In this document: piece by piece, positions 21,611-40,655 of the stretch | Numbering within the stretch: the stretch's first letter is position 1 | How the letters are laid out: the number at the start of each line of letters is the position of its first letter | NCBI GenBank assembly: GCA_964304625.1 | Contig: OZ199838.1 | Span: 5,530,178 to 5,594,177, forward strand | Reading direction: 5' to 3' | Source: Kudoa neothunni | Taxonomy: Eukaryota > Animalia > Cnidaria | DNA: 64,000 bases | Notes under the pieces: model-generated | What the model was told of the DNA's origin: nothing | The model's input: only the letters and a program-made list of their open reading frames with translations | The model's database searches: none | Translations under genes and position numbers: made by a program

Positions 21611-22606
21611 ATGTGGTCATTATTGCAGAAAGTTCAAAAAAGTCTTACTCAAGCAGGTCAGAAAATGAAAATTATAATCGACTGCGATCCTGGCCTGGAC
21701 GATATTGAAGCAATTATTTTGGCTTTAGCAGCTAGACATGTAGATGTTGTTGCCATCACTGCCGTTGCCGGAAACACTGTAACCAATCAAACCTTTATCA
21801 ATGTCCAGAAAATATTATATCATTGTGATCGCACAGATATTCCAGTATACAAGGACCCTAGAATAAATCTGATGGGGTATGAGCCTAGGTCAGATGGTTA
21901 TTTTGGAGCGGACGGTTTGTGTGACTTGGATCTCGAATATGATAAAACCATTCCTTATCAACGACTCAATAGTCCACAAGCGCTTCTACATTACACGCAA
22001 AAGTACCCTGGAGAAATCCACCTTGTTGCTGTCGGTCCTCTAACAAATCTTGCAGTTGCATATCTCATTGATAGTTCATTTCCTAATAAACTGGCTTCGC
22101 TGCATGTAATGGGTGGGGATCGCTCTGAAACCACTGTCAATAACGTGACCCCCTACGCCGAATTCAATTGCCATTGTGATCCTCCAGCATGGAGACTGGT
22201 AATGAATAATTTTAGACTGAAAGGAAAAAAAAGAATTATCATAATTGATTATAAATTTTGTGGCGTCCATCTACTACCCCTACCATTTTTAAATGATTAT
22301 TTCAATAATACGCTTGCCGATGATGTTAGAAATAAGAAAGCCTTTCTAATCAGAAAATCATATGAATACATGTCGAAGAAATTCACGTCGTTTGGAAGTG
22401 TTACCTGCGACCCCTTCGCGTTATTTGTCTGTATCTATCCCGAATTAGAATTCACCGGGAGAGCGTGTGTACTAGAGAAAGTTCATATGGATGGTAAAAC
22501 TTACGGTCACACCGAATTTCGATACGATGATAATGGGCACCTTTTCCTGGTTGATGAAATTGACTTTGATAATTTTCTTCGACTCATGCTAGATTCGTTG
22601 AAATGA
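21611..22606 (+). CDS. Nucleoside hydrolase copy 1 (Ca2+-dependent, Cys-Asp group III type), intronless
   Basis: IIIDCDPGLDD (DxDxxxDD), AGN, YFGADGL, VGPLTNLA, MGG, AEFN and VTCDP. Start at ATG 21611 or 21665. Confidence 0.93.
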   Translation: MWSLLQKVQKSLTQAGQKMKIIIDCDPGLDDIEAIILALAARHVDVVAITAVAGNTVTNQTFINVQKILYHCDRTDIPVYKDPRINLMGYEPRSDGYFGADGLCDLDLEYDKTIPYQRLNSPQALLHYTQKYPGEIHLVAVGPLTNLAVAYLIDSSFPNKLASLHVMGGDRSETTVNNVTPYAEFNCHCDPPAWRLVMNNFRLKGKKRIIIIDYKFCGVHLLPLPFLNDYFNNTLADDVRNKKAFLIRKSYEYMSKKFTSFGSVTCDPFALFVCIYPELEFTGRACVLEKVHMDGKTYGHTEFRYDDNGHLFLVDEIDFDNFLRLMLDSLK

Positions 22607-23347: not shown

Positions 23348-26300
23348 CAGGCACGTGCCGTCAGGGTAGGCAAAGTTAGGCAGTGCCTACCCTATTGAAT
23401 CAAAATTAATTAATTTTGTAAAGATAAAATTCCTTTTATCTCAAACCTACAATAGTTATTTAAATATTCATATAAAACTAGAAAAAATTCGAGGTATTAG
23501 TAACAAGATAGGCACCAGTTGACTCTGCCTTCTAATCGCTACATGAATTCCACGTAAAATTTCGTGACTGGCACGCGCCGTATCATTCTGCGCTTCATTA
23601 CAATTTTAATGACCGACGGTAGGCAGAGCTTATATTGCCTACCGCCGTGTCACGTGGCCTGCTTTAAATATTCCTGTCGTGCGTGCATTATTTATTCAAA
23701 TAAATTGTTCTGTTTATTCAATTTTTTTTCTTATTATTGATTAAAGGACATCTTTGAAATAAGATAATCTATATGACAACTATACCGGTAATATCGCCCA
23801 AAGTTAATACTAATAATTGTCCAACTTGTCATAAGGCGCGCACCCCTGTTAATCTTACTTTATCTCTTCAAGTATGGATAGTGGGCATCTTAAAGAGTTT
23901 TCAAAACTTCATTATGAAGATAAATTACAAATTATAAGAAATGGTAGTCTGACTCCTGGTCTTAAAGAACTTAAACAACTGAAAGGGATGACAATTATCA
24001 GGACGTTTAATACTTCGAGTTATTAGAAAAAAGAGTGATTATGTGGATGTGCTGCAACAATAAGGCTTTTTTGCTTCCCATGTTTGCTTTTATCAATGAC
24101 TAATGAAAGTGTGTGGGTCAAAGAAGGATATTTCGACTTCAATAATTTGCCAATCGCTTTAAATAAGCATGAGCGATCCGCAGCACAGTATCGAAGTCAA
24201 CTCTAATGGAAAACGTTTGGATATGTACGAGTAGCTTTGTTCCTTGATAAACAGAAGATTATTTCAATTGAACTTCACAATCAAAATGTTAAGGAGAACA
24301 AAGAGATATTGAAAACATTGATCCGGGCGGTTCGCTTTTCGATTAAACAAGAACTTACTTTTCGCGGTGATAATGAACACAAACTGCCTTTAAATCGTGG
24401 TAATTATTTGGAGTTGTTAAATTATACGGCAAAATTTGACGAAAAATTATCAAATCATTTACAGAATTCATCAATTTTTTCTGATATTTCCAACAGGATT
24501 CAAAGTGATCTGATTGAGGCTATAAAGGTGGTTTTTGAGAATAATATTAAAGAGGAACTAGCACAGGCTCCGTTCGTTGCGATAGAAGTGGTTGAGACGA
24601 CCGATGTCTCATGCACATCTCAATGTTCAACAATATTAAGATACATATTGGCATCCAAAATTAAGGATGTTTGCATTGGATTTGATACTCTTCGTGACAG
24701 AACAGCGGGTGGTGTAACGGAATCTGTATTTAAAAACATATATAAATACAACATTGAAGAGAAATTAGTCGCACAAACGTATGATGGAACAATAGTTATA
24801 ACCTCCCACTTAAATGGAGTTCAGTCAAAAGTTAGACTAGACAATAGATATCGACTTCACTGTTTACTCGCTGTTATACCCATAAGTTAAATCTTGTGTT
24901 GTCACAATCCGCCGAGTTTATCCCTGATTGTACGAGCTTTTTCAAGACTAATGAAGAACTTTCCTCTTTTTTCAAAAATTCAATGAAACGGGTCCAATTT
25001 CTTGATGAGATTGTGCGGAGACGCAATCCAACAGCAGCGACAACGAGATGGAATTCAAATTCAAAATTAGTGCAAATGATATTAGAGTATCACGGTGATC
25101 TTTGCAAACTTTTCTACAATATAAACAACAATCCGCATTTTGGGATTCAGACACTTTACTTCGAAGTAATGGACTTCAATTGGCTAAAAAACGACTCAAC
25201 ATACTTTTTATTGATGATATATAATGAAATTTTCATGTTAACTGACGCGCTCTTCAATATATTGCAGATGAAAATGATAGACATTGCGTACTGCATGGAA
25301 AGAATCAATGGAACAATAACAAAACTTGAGGATATGCGCATAAAATTTGAGTCATTGTATTATAATTTCGAAAAATATTGTTAAGAAAATATCTTAACTA
25401 GACCTATCCTTCCCCTCAATGTGACACAAAAAATGAAAGAGCGATATTATTGGGTACAATAGTCAGTGATATAATAAAGAATCTGAGAACGAGATCTAAT
25501 GATTTCGAAAATCTCAAGTTTATTTCATTGATTAATAGAAATAATTTTAACAATTTATCATGCCAAATTGATACGAGTGCCCTTGAAAGTCTGCAAACGA
25601 ATTATGAAAAATGCTTGGACATTTTAAGACTGAAAGGTGATTTGGCCGGAATTTATAATGCTCACGTATTCAATGAATAGTCCCCTACAAAATTGTTCGA
25701 TTTTATCTCCCCAAATCCACTGGACCAAATATTTCCTGAAGTTGTTAAATTGTTACAATTAATTTTAACGATTCCTGCAACAAATATTTCTGTGGAAAGA
25801 TCGTTTTCTGCATTGAAACGAATTAAAATCTACACCAGGAACATGATAACAAACCAACGACCTTCTTCCCTTGCATTAATATCGATTGAAAAGGAAAGAC
25901 TTAACCAAATGGAACAAGACCCGACCTTCAATTTCTATGAAAAGGTGATTGATACCTTTGCTACAACAAAAGAAAGAAGATTAGGTTTCTTTTATAAGTA
26001 GAAAAATACAAAACACCAACTCTCAAATATTTTTGTAATCTTAACTTACAGCAATGATTTATCCGCTTTATTTTGGCCTATCATTACATTATTGGTTTTT
26101 ATTGTAAAATATTGTAAAAATAATCTCTTTATTAAGTAATTTAGATGTCTATGTAGCATAGGACCGGGTCACAAATTTAAATTAAGAATGTTCTATGGCG
26201 TTAACTAGATATTACCTCCATAATAATTGTTAAGAATTGAGTATTATTAATTTCATGATATATAAATCATTATAATATAAAAATTTATCATTCCATTATT

Positions 26301-33852: not shown

Positions 33853-35258
33853 TATCATAATTTTATTCTTCCAGAAAAAAATCATCTTTACATTCATAAT
33901 ATCTTATATATTTGGTGTATACGACTATAACATATTTTAATTGTTCGTTAATAGCAGAATTTAGGTAAAATCTCATAACTTGATCAGTGGCCCGTAGCAA
34001 AAGGTTTGTACGATATGTCAACACTTGACTTCTTTATTTCTCCTTTATCAACGGAAATTATACTTTAAAATTACTCGAAACAAATAATTTCACGATTATA
34101 CAAGTATTATGTCTATTTATAATAAAAAACTGTGTACAACCTAGAATACCTAATATATGTACAAGTGGATAATTTCTGTACAGCGTTCTCATTAATTTGA
34201 ATTCCTATTTGTATTTTATTTATTTTCACATTCCTATTTTGATTATAAGGCCAAAAATACGTAGAAAAAGATTTAATCATTCTTAATCTTGGTTCCGACG
34301 CATATTAGCATGGTTCAACACCGCCACAAACAGTTAATCTGAACAATGTCATCGTGGTTTAATTCATCCACCTTGCTGCAATTTGTAGATTACATTGGTT
34401 GCTATAATGGAAATGTCATAAACGTGGCACATTGAAAATTACATCTTTATTTAGTAAAAATTCATTGAGAGGATATTTTAATAACTACATGGATATGATA
34501 ACCGCTACCATTCGCAACGACGTGATACCTATTTACTACAGATTTACGAATGAAACAACATTCGTTTGAATCCTTAAAATAAAAATTTTTATTAGATTAA
34601 TTGTTAAACTAAATTTTTGACTGTAACTTAGACAAGCAGTCTTCTGTACGGTACTATACACATGAACATAAATATTCCTTGGATAATCTAAAATATTATT
34701 GAGTGCATATATATGGAAAATTTATTTCTCAAATCAAGAAATTAGTACGGAAAAAATCTTTATTCATATAGCGCAACTAATTAAATAAATTATAGATGAT
34801 TTGAAACAAACAAAAAAATACGTGCCAATATTAGTGACAAAGTGATAATAAATGGAGATGGGAAATATTATACCTTTGTTATATGTGTATATATATATAA
34901 ACTAACCACATTAGGTACCATCATTTATAGTTTAATCCGAACAAACGTGATGTTTCAAAGAGCATATGATAAAAAAAGAAAGGATACTCCCTAAAATCCC
35001 CGAAATAGCTCTTGAGTGATGGCGATTAAATAGTAGTTGATTCTTTATGTAAAAACTATGAGATTAAAATATAACCAGATTGATAACAATAAATATTAAT
35101 TGTTACTAACTTTAAGCAAAAATTAAGAAGTATTAGAAATAGATTAAGTAAACGCCAAGAGTTATTGTAGAAGTCAGTAATATCATTTTTGAAACCTTTA
35201 ATCTAGCGTTCATTCATATTAAAACAGTGAATATAGGTGTTGTTGGTAAGTATGAAAA

Positions 35259-36226
35259 ATGAAAATTATTATCGATTGTGATCCTGGAGTGGATGATATG
35301 CAAGCCATAATTATGGCCGTTGCGGCTAAACATGTGGAAATTGTTGCCATCACTGCATTACCTGGAAATGCTGTAGCCGATCAAACCTACATCAACATTC
35401 AAAAAATATTATACCACTGCAATCGCACAGATATCCCAGTGTATAAAGGACAACGGGTAAATTTCATGGGTGATGAGGTTTCGTCCGATGGCTACTTTGG
35501 GGCTGACGGTTTATGTGAGTTGAATCTCAAACATGATAAAACTATACCACCTCAACAACTCAACAGTATCCAAGCTCTTCTTCACTACACAGAAAAGTAT
35601 CCTGGAGAAATTCATCTTATTGCCATAGGCCCTTTAACCAATCTTGCCACTGCGTATCTCCTCGATAGTTCGTTTCCTCAAAAGCTGGCCTCATTGCATA
35701 TAATGGGTGGAGATCGTTCAGAAACCACCTCCTACAATGTGACAAAATATGCTGAATTTAACTGCTACTGCGATCCCCTGCTTGGAAATTGGTAACTAAA
35801 AATTTTAGGTTGCCTGGTAACAAAAAAATTAACGTGATCGACTTCACATTTTGTGTCGAAAACATGCTTCCTCTTCCATTTTTGAAGAGCTATTTTCAAA
35901 ATTCCGAATCTCAACACCCCCAAAATAAAAAAGCTCAGTTGGTGAGGATGACACATGAGTTTATGTCGAAAAAATTCACAAGCTTTGGAGCTGTTACCGC
36001 AGATCCGTTCGCATTGTTCCTGTGTATTTATCCCCAATACAAATTCACCGGAAAAGCTGCTTTTATTGAAAAGGTTCACATGGAAGGTGAAACTTACGGT
36101 CACACCGAATTCCGTTATGATGAAAATGGAAATCTTCTATTGATTGATCAAATCGATTTTGATAATTTCCTTCGCCTTATGTTGGAATCAATACAATCCA
36201 ACACTAATACCACCAACTCCATCTAA
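35259..36226 (+). CDS. Nucleoside hydrolase copy 2, intronless, one-base frameshift near 35777 (probable assembly error or young pseudogene)
   Basis: Two overlapping ORFs join if the C4 run in GATCCCCTGC is restored to C5 as in copy 3. All family motifs present; VTADP. Confidence 0.88.
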
Positions 36227-37417
36227 TATTTATAATGTATTTATTGATCACGCGTAGTATTTGTGTATAGTTTCAATTTTTTTGTTTATTAGCGTTTTAT
36301 GACAAAACAGTGTTGTTTAAAAATCATGAAAATTGTTTTAGATGAGTAAAGTCGTGGATGTTCGATTTAAAATAGGTTTCATATAGAGGGAGTTAAATAT
36401 TTTGTATTAATTGTCGGTTTTTTTAATTGCGCGGCATCTCTGTTATTATTGAATACCCATCATTTTTCTAATCAACTTACGAGGTGCATGTAAAATTTTG
36501 TAAATAACGTAGAAAGTCTTCTCAATATTAATCTGATTAAAATATTGAGTTATCGTTGAGGCAAATAAAATCAATTTTTGGTCTCACTACTACCTTAGGT
36601 CATTAAATAATTTTTTCTTTTGTCTCGGCGACAAAAAATCTGAATTTATTTTACCGAAAGGGGGATATAAAATTAAGGCGATCTCTCTTACATGATCCAA
36701 ACACTTGACAATCGTCTTAAGGAAATCTTCTACATATGCGAGATATCTCAAAATAACTTATTTTACGTTTATTAGAAACGCGTTATAATTTTTTAACGAT
36801 TTTTAATAGGCAAAAGCAACTCACGTTTCTTACACCTAAATCCGACGTGATATGGATGGCTATAACTTTGAATTAGTAAGTCAATTAAATCTTATTTAAT
36901 CAACTTTAAACATACAATGTCTATAGTTTCAGAAATATTGATGGAAATTAGCTATTGAAATGAAGGTAATAAGTGAATTATTGGGGTCGTATTGATTGAA
37001 ATACTTTGGGGATCAGTAAGAAAAATAATATTATCACTACAAAGATTAATATTCAGCGTTATGAAAGATTAAATTTACAAATTCTTCCTTTCTTAGATAA
37101 AAAAGCTATTAACTTTAAAAAAAATTATCATATGTTTTTTGGATAAAGCCAAGTGTAACGTGTATAATAGCATGATTCTTTAATAAAAACCGCATACGAA
37201 AAGAATAAATTAAAATAAATACTTGAATTATCTTAATAAAATGCATATACCAAAATTACAATCATTAATAATGGTAATAACAGGAAAAACAAATTTATTT
37301 ATTCCAATAATTTAATAAATCTGCTTAAAAGAATACTATAAAAACATAAGTCTTGTAAAATTAGGAATTAAAATTTAATTCAATAAAACTTTTAGCAGGC
37401 ATATATACATATAAAAA

Positions 37418-38371
37418 ATGGTCGAAAAAATGAAAATTATTATTGATTGTGATCCTGGAGTCGACGATATGGAAACCATAATAATGGCCATCGCGGCTAG
37501 GCATGTGGAAATTGTTGCCATCACTACAGTTGCTGGTAACACTGTAGCCGATCAAACCTACATCAACATTAAAAAAATATTATACCACTGCAATCGCACA
37601 GATATCCCAGTGTATAAAGGACAACGGGTAAATTTCATGGGTGATGAGGTTTCGTCCGATGGCTACTTTGGGGCTGACGGTTTATGTGAGTTGAATCTCA
37701 AACATGATAAAACTATACCACCTCAACAACTCAACAGTATCCAAGCTCTTCTTCGCTACACAGAAAAGTATCCTGGAGAAATTCATCTTATTGCCATAGG
37801 CCCTTTAACCAATCTTGCCACTGCGTATCTCCTCGATAGTTCGTTTCCTCAAAAGCTGGCCTCATTGCATATAATGGGTGGAGATCGTTCAGAAACTACC
37901 AAAAATAATATAACAAAATATGCTGAATTTAACTGCTACTGCGATCCCCCTGCTTGGAAATTGGTAACTAAAAATTTTAGGTTGCCTGGTAACAAAAAAA
38001 TTAACGTGATCGACTTCACATTTTGTGTCGAAAACATGCTTCCTCTTCCATTTTTGAAGAGCTATTTTCAAAATTCCGAATCTCAACACCCCCAAAATAA
38101 AAAAGCTCAGTTGGTGAGGATGACATATGAGTTTATGTCGAAAAAATTCACAAGCTTTGGAGATACAACTGCCGATCCTTTCGCATTGTTTGTTTGTATT
38201 TATCCCCAATACAAATTCACCGGAAAAGCTGCTTTTATTGAAAAGGTTCACATGGAAGGTGAAACTTACGGTCACACCGAATTCCGTTATGATGAAAATG
38301 GAAATCTTCTATTGATTGATCAAATCGATTTTGATAATTTCCTTCGCCTTATGTTGGAATCACTAAAATAA
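37418..38371 (+). CDS. Nucleoside hydrolase copy 3, intronless, 317 aa
   Basis: IIIDCDPGVDD, AGN, GPLTNLA, MGG, AEFN and TTADP. Uninterrupted ORF. Confidence 0.93.
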   Translation: MVEKMKIIIDCDPGVDDMETIIMAIAARHVEIVAITTVAGNTVADQTYINIKKILYHCNRTDIPVYKGQRVNFMGDEVSSDGYFGADGLCELNLKHDKTIPPQQLNSIQALLRYTEKYPGEIHLIAIGPLTNLATAYLLDSSFPQKLASLHIMGGDRSETTKNNITKYAEFNCYCDPPAWKLVTKNFRLPGNKKINVIDFTFCVENMLPLPFLKSYFQNSESQHPQNKKAQLVRMTYEFMSKKFTSFGDTTADPFALFVCIYPQYKFTGKAAFIEKVHMEGETYGHTEFRYDENGNLLLIDQIDFDNFLRLMLESLK

Positions 38372-39521
38372 TCAATTTCATCCTTATCGACATACATTCT
38401 CTGACATTTTTCGGCATTTCGATATTATTTCATTGATCTTTTATTGACAATACAAGTTGTCATTTTTTGCAATCTGTGTATTATGCTATCTGTAATAGAA
38501 TTTATATAATACAAGTGAATTCATATATTTTATTTTTGAATTTTGATGAAAAACTTTTGGTTTGTATTTGTGAATAAAGTAAATACTAATTAAATAAGTG
38601 TTCTTATCTGCCAATTCGTTTGAATTATTTCTTTAATTTTTTTCTTAAAAATTCAGAAAAATGAGTTAACGCTGAATAAGCATATTGGCTGATAAATGGG
38701 TTTCTATTGAAATATTAGAAATAAATATAAATGATTTATATATTTTTTAAGTATTTCTAATTTACAAAAATTGAATTTTAGTTCAACAGATAATCATTTA
38801 TAAAACATGAAATTTTACCGAATTTTAATTTTATAACCAAATTCTAATTAATAATGCCACTATTCTAATATATGACTTCATTTGGTTTTATTAATTTAAA
38901 AAATAAATTACATGACCTCATATAAACAGTATAATACTTTTTTGATTCTAATGAATATTGATATCAAAATTATAAAATTTTTTACAAAATCTCTTATTAC
39001 TCCTTACATTTTTACAAGACTAATCATCGTACTCATACCATCTAAATATAAGAATAATTTTGATCAAATTAACTGTATGTAAAAAGAAGGGAATTAGTGT
39101 GTTTGCATCAACATAATCGTATGCGCCAGCAACATTTGTTTCTGATAGAAGAATATGTGGAAACCCTTAGTTATAGAAACGTTAACACTTACGCGACGAA
39201 CGGGGTATTTTAGGAACCCCAATTATTTTGTTTTCCGAAATTTCTATTCTTACCTTTTTATTTTCTTTATAATTTTCCGTATAATCTTTTAATATCAAAA
39301 ACTTTAATCTAAACTAGCAAAAAATTCTTTCTTTAAGGTTATAAAATAATAGACTACTTTTTTAAACCAGTATATAATGAAGAATAATGTGTCAAAATAT
39401 CTTTAATTTGGCTCTTTAAAATTATTCTTACATTTTTATAAATCTTCACACATTTCGCCATTGAATGGTTCAAAAAAATATTAGATTTGCAATATTCATT
39501 AGGCCTGCCAATAAAATATCA

Positions 39522-40655
39522 GGTAATGGTAAATTTATGCGGCACCTAAGAAACGTCCTCTTACGCATTTTTTTCGCATTTCTTTGTTCATTATTCTTGA
39601 TAATAAAATAATATGGAGAGAGAAAATTTGGCTCAAAACAATAGTTTCAAAATTTTGATAATTTTTCATCCGAATGCAGCTGGATACACGTGTAATCTTT
39701 ATCTTTTTTCAAAAAACATTGAATTGATCTCTAATTTGTTTTGATAATCATTTATAAATTCGTTCTATTTCGTATTATTCACCACATAAACACAAATTTT
39801 ATAATATCAAATTTAATTATACAGGTTTTTATAGGTTTTAAACATGAATAGTTTAAAGGCGAGACGACAAACACGTGCTCTTAAAATATATTTTCTTAAT
39901 TGTCTTGGAGCTGACGAGTTTTTTCAATAATTAATCAACATTTTATTTCAATGGGGAAAATAACTTAAAGCAGATTATAGGAAGTTATTACTGCTGAGGA
40001 GTAATTCTTACATGTGTGTTAGTATAGCATAGGATAAACATGAAAATGTAGTTATAAAAAAACTTAAAAATAAAAAAATTGTTATTTCTATAAAATTATT
40101 AGTTTTAATCAATTATATATGTACCGATTAAAATAATAACCCTAGTTAACATATTGTGTTCACATCTTGTAATATTCCCAATTAGTATATTTTGTCGAAT
40201 TGTTTGTTAGGAAATTTCGGTATATAAAAAAAACTTATAAAACAATAAAAATATATTCTAACATTTTTTTTCCAACGTTTTACACATACTTCAATGTAAA
40301 AAGATTAATAAAAAATCATAAACTAAAACAAATCTTACTACATTAATATCTATATTCAAAAGTTCACAAAGTATTTTATTAAAGCGAAAAATCTAAATAG
40401 TAATAATAAATAACTTTTGAATTAATAACTAAGAAAGAAACAATGTAATTCAATGTTTGTTGAAAAAAAGATGGAAATTACATGTGTATCCGACCGCATT
40501 CGGATGAAAAATTCTCAAAATTTTGAAGTTATTATCCTGAGCCAATTTTTTTCTCTTCATATTCTTTTATTTTATTATCAAGAATCGTGAAAATGAAATG
40601 CGATAAAACATGCGCAAGAGGACTTTTTTTAGGTGCCGCATACTCTTCCATTACC
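39522..40655. mobile_element. Long-TIR MITE with GGTAATG ends (Merlin-like)
   Basis: About 190-bp imperfect inverted repeats beginning GGTAATGG and ending CCATTACC, the same terminal motif as the Merlin at 53134. Appears to sit inside a TAGG...CCCTA hAT-like MITE (about 39500-40830). Confidence 0.75.

Follow-up and report, generated by a model that had tools for sequence, protein, structure and literature searches.

Tandem nucleoside hydrolase genes of Kudoa neothunni form a mosaic that points to gene conversion, with three divergent islands beside predicted active-site residues

What keeps two neighbouring genes identical over most of their length and sharply different in three short segments? 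The question is raised by a window of Kudoa neothunni DNA (the whole stretch analysed here, 64,000 nucleotides (nt) of contig OZ199838.1), which holds three full-length, intronless genes of the nucleoside hydrolase (NH) family (PF01156), all on the plus strand. In the lines below, lengths are in amino acids (aa), and model quality and fold similarity are given as the predicted local distance difference test (pLDDT) and the template-modelling (TM) score.

21665-22606, plus strand: copy 1 (c1), intact, 313 aa; PF01156 match at E 8e-52
35259-36226, plus strand: copy 2 (c2), intronless; the assembled frame is broken at a run of C residues (C-run), and the first 178 aa match PF01156 at E 5e-47
37430-38371, plus strand: copy 3 (c3), intact, 313 aa; PF01156 match at E 1.4e-55, model pLDDT 95, NH fold at TM 0.85

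Copy 3 carries the full signature of the family. It matches profile positions 1-296 of 297 with 189.5 bits, above the curated cut-off of 34.2, and its AlphaFold2 model (pLDDT 95.2, predicted TM score 0.94) has the NH fold, the top Foldseek matches being nucleoside hydrolases throughout (TM 0.81-0.88). An in-frame ATG four codons upstream (37418) is an alternative start that would give a protein of 317 aa. Copy 1, which lies 13.6 kb upstream and is 72% identical to c3 in amino acid sequence, served as the outgroup for the comparison of c2 with c3. Its nucleotide divergence of about 28% is even along the length and is the same from c2 and c3, within the islands described below and outside them.

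With an offset of 2171/2172 nt, copies 2 and 3 align without a gap save for a single base, and they differ at 38 of 933 aligned positions. Three islands hold 35 of these differences, and the 768 nt outside them contain 3 substitutions (35400, 35584 and 35954) and 1 one-nucleotide indel; all stretches between the differences are identical base for base. The parts of this mosaic are as follows.

35271-35372, plus strand: island 1 of c2, codons 5-38, with 17 differences (35273-35370); it matches island 1 of c3 at 37442-37543, plus strand
35373-35723, plus strand: tract between islands 1 and 2 of c2, identical to 37544-37894 of c3 save at 35400 (Q48K) and 35584 (H109R)
35724-35741, plus strand: island 2 of c2, codons 156-161, with 8 differences in 18 nt (35726-35741); it matches island 2 of c3 at 37895-37912, plus strand
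35742-35989, plus strand: tract between islands 2 and 3 of c2, identical to c3 save for the C-run indel and 35954 (Y233H, derived in c2)
35775-35778, plus strand: C-run of c2, four C against five in c3 (37946-37950), a 1-nt deletion in c2
35990-36022, plus strand: island 3 of c2, codons 245-255, with 10 differences in 33 nt (35991-36022); it matches island 3 of c3 at 38162-38194, plus strand
36023-36190, plus strand: 3' tract of c2, identical to 38195-38362 of c3, from island 3 to codon 311, where homology stops
36191-36226, plus strand: 3' end specific to c2; the stop codon common to c1 and c3 (after ..SLK) is missing, which leaves 9 extra codons in the corrected frame

Island 1 contains six purely synonymous codons and eight replacements (residues 15, 16, 21, 24, 33, 34, 35 and 38). 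Island 2 reads TTSYNV in c2 and TTKNNI in c3 (S158, Y159 and V161 against K, N and I, with TCC TAC facing AAA AAT), and island 3 reads AVTADPFALFL against DTTADPFALFV (A245, V246 and L255 against D, T and V), with four synonymous codons. Identity between the copies is 79% in the islands, where the longest identical run is 29 nt; elsewhere the identical tracts measure 183, 141, 213 and 168 nt. Homology begins 5 nt upstream of the ATG and reaches codon 311, and the upstream, intergenic and downstream DNA of the two copies have no similarity at E<=0.01.

This mosaic is very probably the product of gene conversion between old tandem duplicates. A GENECONV-style permutation was run on 537 sites polymorphic in six homologues (100,000 permutations); the comparisons drew on c1, on two further paralogs from another contig of the genome (c4 and c5) and on P0001, an unnamed public run-assembly sequence. 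The match runs of c2 and c3 span 135, 113, 92 and 64 polymorphic sites and are longer than expected by chance, with P = 3.5e-4 for the longest run and P<1e-5 for the sum of the top four, which was never reached in the permutations. The duplication is, moreover, older than the identical tracts suggest: the flanks cannot be aligned and, by the Nei-Gojobori method, synonymous divergence (dS) is 0.72 and nonsynonymous divergence (dN) 0.15 in the islands, against a dS of 0 (0/154 synonymous sites) and a dN of 0.005 in the other 260 codons. Purely synonymous codon differences show the same contrast (11/41 in the islands, 0/252 elsewhere; Fisher 1e-10), thus indicating an old duplication in which most of the gene has since been homogenised. 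The islands are not simply the variable regions of the family, since c2 and c3 do not differ at all in its most variable stretch (nt 601-690, where c1 and c3 show 28-32 differences per 60 nt). No conversion was found in the other paralog pairs, whose longest identical runs are 11-26 nt compared with 213 nt for c2 and c3.

A different origin of the islands, by patching in from a known paralog, was ruled out: at the 38 differing sites, agreement of c1, c4, c5 and P0001 is split about evenly between c2 and c3. The first-pass annotation of this locus, made from the sequence alone, had proposed an old duplication followed by gene conversion, and had counted 17, 8 and 10 differences in the islands with 3 substitutions and 1 indel outside. 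Those counts are exact on realignment, and both proposals are borne out by the age contrast, the unrelated flanks and the failure to find another paralog as donor.

The position of the islands in the protein was obtained by alignment to the catalytic residues and from the secondary structure of the c3 model. Residues D6, D8, D12, D13, N37, T127, N160, E166, N168 and D249 show little or no variation among 34 homologues and are identical in c2 and c3. They provide the DxDxxxDD fingerprint with the C-terminal Ca2+-binding Asp (D6, D8, D12, D13 and D249) and the ribose-binding Asn/Glu/Asn together with the Asn39 and Thr126 positions (N37, T127, N160, E166 and N168); in the ranges aligned to the structure 1MAS, D6/D8/D12/D13/N37/N160/E166/N168/D249 correspond to Crithidia D8/D10/D14/D15/N39/N160/E166/N168/D242. 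Island 1 holds the DxDxxxDD motif and, in the model, covers a strand (2-7), helix alpha1 (11-22), strand beta2 (27-33) and the G36-N37 loop. The model places island 2 in the loop that leads from strand 143-149 towards E166, where it flanks the invariant N160, and island 3 surrounds the Ca2+-binding D249. Three random intervals of the same sizes would each hold a catalytic residue with a probability of ~0.017, a rough and post hoc value. In the Trichomonas enzyme TvRH, Ile177 lies in the leaving-group pocket and Asn39 hydrogen-bonds the base (PMC10474468); by homology these correspond to residue 161 (V/I), in island 2, and to N37. Alignment and model together suggest that "active-site islands" is a fair description, and the segments do adjoin DxDxxxDD/N37, N160 and D249 (Crithidia N39, N160 and D242), where the first-pass annotation had placed them.

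An account that would join these observations is that c2 and c3, spaced 2.17 kb apart on the same strand, arose by an old tandem duplication of the intronless gene of a Ca2+-dependent nucleoside hydrolase, and that about 82% of their coding sequence has been held identical by interlocus gene conversion while three short segments escaped it and retain the old divergence. Conversion would have been recurrent, because diverged sequences such as the islands are poor conversion partners, which argues that the tracts stayed similar throughout by being converted repeatedly. Repeated conversion of the tracts should erase neutral islands of 18 and 33 nt that lie within them, and this favours selection against conversion: events that overwrote the islands would have been selected against while c2 diverged in function. 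The replacements V34L, T38A, N159Y, D245A and V255L, derived in c2, would then sit beside N37, N160 and D249, and the synonymous differences would have gathered around these protected positions, in line with the Teshima-Innan model of 2008. If real, the 1-nt deletion may later have inactivated copy 2. We give this account, taken as a whole, an even chance; that conversion is "ongoing", that selection acts on the islands and that the enzymes differ in specificity is what we infer. A bolder version holds that two hydrolases of a purine-auxotrophic parasite evolve in concert save for about 14 residues that selection keeps different, in which case the islands would map determinants of substrate specificity to the ribose/Ca2+ side of the active site, to which no such role had been assigned before. 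We regard this version as tentative and its truth as rather unlikely.

Several points weigh against selection for a difference in function. Structural work assigns the main part in base and leaving-group preference to the beta3-alpha3 loop, the alpha8 helix and the residue that precedes the last Asp (PMC8910321, PMC10474468), and c2 and c3 are identical in the loop (YFG), at that residue (A248) and, save for Y233H, in the alpha8 region. All catalytic residues are likewise identical, so that a difference in specificity is not predicted by the best-known determinants. As assembled, the open reading frame (ORF) of c2 lacks the C-terminal half, and this frameshift makes present-day selection on the islands of c2 doubtful. 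Conversion may work less well at the 5' edge of homology, which is where island 1 is found; a high density of mismatches could stop conversion with no help from selection; and the evidence base is one genome. The first-pass annotation had inferred an enzyme set tuned to different nucleosides from old duplicates under conversion. The duplicates and the conversion stand; the tuned set is put in doubt by a c2 that is frameshifted as assembled and by the catalytic residues and known determinants that the two copies share.

It is possible, if unlikely, that conversion is real and that the islands are merely what patchy mismatch repair, heteroduplex rejection or a 5' edge effect has left behind, with no part played by selection. 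Island 1 does abut the homology boundary, but at the 3' end homogenisation continues to the very boundary of homology, contrary to a general edge effect. The four identical tracts are each of ordinary conversion-tract size, and the 3 substitutions and 1 indel within them would fit one recent episode; conversion is, however, inefficient at the divergence of the islands, so tracts that have long been similar should have lost neutral islands of 18 and 33 nt. Sharing of the known base-specificity elements by c2 and c3 agrees with such neutrality, whereas the presence of catalytic residues in all three islands (P ~0.017, as above) does not.

The state of c2 bears on a second alternative. With four C in its C-run, the frame of c2 is shifted: the ORF that opens with the ATG is 178 aa long and ends at 35795, and the remainder lies in another frame up to 36226. 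(The first-pass annotation had counted the indel and missed that it breaks the frame.) The region is present in four runs of a single sample, from which the assembly was probably made, and these were examined as per-run contigs rather than raw reads; contigs from runs X1 and X2 were placed on 35100-38500 and, being from the same sample, give no independent support. The sole X2 contig across the C-run of c2 reads five C, followed by the c2 variant at 35954 and island 3 of c2, and the sole X1 contig over the shared tracts, placed on c3, also reads five. There was no contig with four C among those of X1 and X2, in which short-word graphs cannot phase the C-run and drop one branch of the bubble. 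On balance we lean towards a genuine deletion, carried by some or all of the sampled population. Two metatranscriptome runs labelled with the same species contained 0 reads of the organism and hence offer no test of expression.

That c2 is decaying or dead and is being overwritten by a functional c3, the islands being the parts still left and their replacements the result of relaxed constraint, seems to us distinctly improbable. With c1, P0001, c4 and c5 as outgroups, six replacements are derived in c2 (V34L, T38A, N159Y, Y233H, D245A and V255L) and one in c3 (H109R), while ten are ambiguous. In the protein tree, where c1, P0001 and the pair (c2, c3) form an unresolved trio, the branch of c2 is 2.7-fold longer than that of c3 (0.038 against 0.014). 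By these comparisons c2 is the fast, derived copy, which together with the frameshift at 35775-35778 and the loss of the shared stop codon with its 9-codon extension is what decay would produce. Yet dN/dS in the islands is ~0.2, where ~0.5 would be expected had c2 been neutral throughout, thus indicating long-term constraint on both copies, in c2 for most of its history. The islands contain neither stop nor indel and keep T32, G36, N37, N160 and D249, and the single disabling lesion is the one for which no supporting contig was found in either X1 or X2.

It is very improbable that the coding sequence was duplicated recently and that positive selection or clustered hypermutation then altered three patches. 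Such a history would account for multi-nucleotide codon changes such as TCC TAC against AAA AAT and for the many replacements beside active-site residues; it would not account for a dS of 0.72 in the islands, for 11 synonymous-only codons there and none elsewhere, or for flanks that are unrelated right up to the start codon and from codon 311, unlike those of a recent segmental or retro-duplication.

The assembly itself was compared with the single-run contigs. Those of X1 and X2 agree with it without a substitution; island 1 of c2 is joined to its unique upstream flank, and the 3' end of c2 runs through the spacer into island 1 of c3. Contigs break at the islands, and depth over the shared tracts is about twice that elsewhere (X2: 20-21 against 8-11), while the linkage of the islands along each copy rests on the assembly. 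That paralog collapse or polishing made the identical tracts, which the first-pass annotation had named as grounds for giving up its reading, is hardly credible: near-identical tandem copies are a classic source of error, and the sole indel lies in a homopolymer where a contig disagrees with the assembly, but the joins to unique flanks, the breaks at islands and the doubled depth mean that neither process explains the mosaic, and truly divergent tracts, in copies 2.2 kb apart, would have yielded extra single-depth contigs. Two X2 contigs leave the gene at 35759 and 36149 and continue into single-copy sequence 390 kb and 300 kb away on the same contig (at 5140777 and 5868696 of contig C1 of the genome, G000) with no similarity to hydrolase genes; they are probably chimeric and not variants.

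Whole-genome searches covered 40.3 Mb in 4 contigs. A six-frame search for nucleoside hydrolases returned five paralogs, the three of the window and two that lie 5.8 kb apart on another contig.

Contig C3 of G000, 1551153-1552091, minus strand: c4, 64% identical to c3 (L003:1501-2445)
Contig C3 of G000, 1545352-1546290, minus strand: c5, 52% identical to c3 (L004:1501-2445)

All five are colinear over 311 codons without indels, and c4 and c5 differ from each other at 28% of nucleotides with no conversion. Copy 5 departs from conserved positions, with R in place of E155, Tyr before the last Asp and an SSHRLDG loop, and its activity may on this evidence have changed or been lost. The closest public proteins are unnamed run-assembly sequences, namely P0001 (71% identity; 70-71% to c1, c2 and c3) and five more at 48-55%; the closest named homologues, from the myxozoan Thelohanellus kitauei, are just 34-35% identical. 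A literature search returned no paper that combines "Myxozoa" and "nucleoside hydrolase".

The window around these genes is AT-rich (GC content 27-38%) with few long ORFs, and contains eukaryote-type exon fragments of RPL7, RPN2 and a topoisomerase. Between c1 and c2, at 24237-25384, lie two neighbouring ORFs (217 and 162 aa), the first of which matches the transposase-derived domain DUF4371 (E 7e-12); this is probably a broken transposon-derived gene. About 1.2 kb 3' of c3 is an inverted repeat (39602-39716 / 40457-40571) whose 115-nt arms show 83% complementarity and are separated by 740 nt; it may mark the two ends of a small transposable element. A 139-aa ORF at 54086-54505 matches PF12762, the ISXO2-like DDE transposase domain, at E 1.4e-14, an unusual find in a eukaryotic context.

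Nucleoside hydrolases are salvage enzymes, and genome-wide profile searches found no ATIC (PF01808), AIR carboxylase (PF00731) or GARS (PF01071). The same method did find OMP decarboxylase (C2:1105397-1106005). The organism is thus probably a purine auxotroph, without de novo synthesis, and the result suggests that pyrimidine synthesis is retained. Loss of de novo purine synthesis has likewise been reported for T. kitauei (PMC4986447). The genome has two PNP/UDP-type phosphorylase loci, one of them with 6 in-frame stops (C3:1138696-1139280). A five-member hydrolase family fits purine auxotrophy, and salvage enzymes may matter to this organism given the two together; mammals lack the nucleoside hydrolase family (PMC8910321). 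If selection does hold the islands, a few residues beside N37, N160 and D249 would tune a nucleoside hydrolase. For teaching, copies 2 and 3 in any case illustrate conversion tracts and escape islands very cleanly; they also carry a caution, in that a homopolymer call in an assembly decides whether a gene seems dead or alive.

Among known enzymes, c2 and c3 share PF01156 and the catalytic residues with the group I N-ribohydrolases (Crithidia IU-NH, 1MAS/2MAS; E. coli RihA and RihB; plant NRH; Trichomonas AGNH, 8DB6), to whose structures the c3 model corresponds at TM 0.82-0.86, although identity to solved nucleoside hydrolases is only 21-26%. Unlike group I, which has a His at each of two positions (PMC8910321), they have Phe in place of the His of the beta3-alpha3 loop (Y79-F80-G81) and Ala in place of the His before the last Asp (A248-D249); the Trichomonas adenosine/guanosine hydrolase 8DB6 also has an Ala that aligns with the latter. 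With Phe and Ala at the two His positions, neither the route of leaving-group activation nor the substrate range can be read off. The metazoan group III enzymes (C. elegans, Xenopus) are animal-type like these paralogs and are defined by a Cys before the last Ca2+-binding Asp (PMC8910321). That signature is present in c1 and c4, whereas c2, c3 and P0001 have Ala and c5 has Tyr; from c1 to c5, the two classic leaving-group positions read F/C, F/A, F/A, H/C and R/Y.

As a genomic pattern, the pair resembles the primate red/green opsins (exon 5), Tigriopus GOT1 and the medaka RH2 opsins, which are also nearby paralogs that are mostly homogenised, with sharp peaks of divergence, linked synonymous sites included, near functionally important residues; such peaks under conversion have both theory and precedent (PMC3924837, PMC3728101, PMC7337190). 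Unlike those pairs, c2 and c3 encode a metabolic enzyme and have three islands within a single intronless coding sequence of 0.94 kb, c2 is possibly frameshifted, and their divergence is known from sequence only. Conversion with escaping islands, as in the opsins, is a pattern already known; the nucleoside hydrolases are a new family for it.

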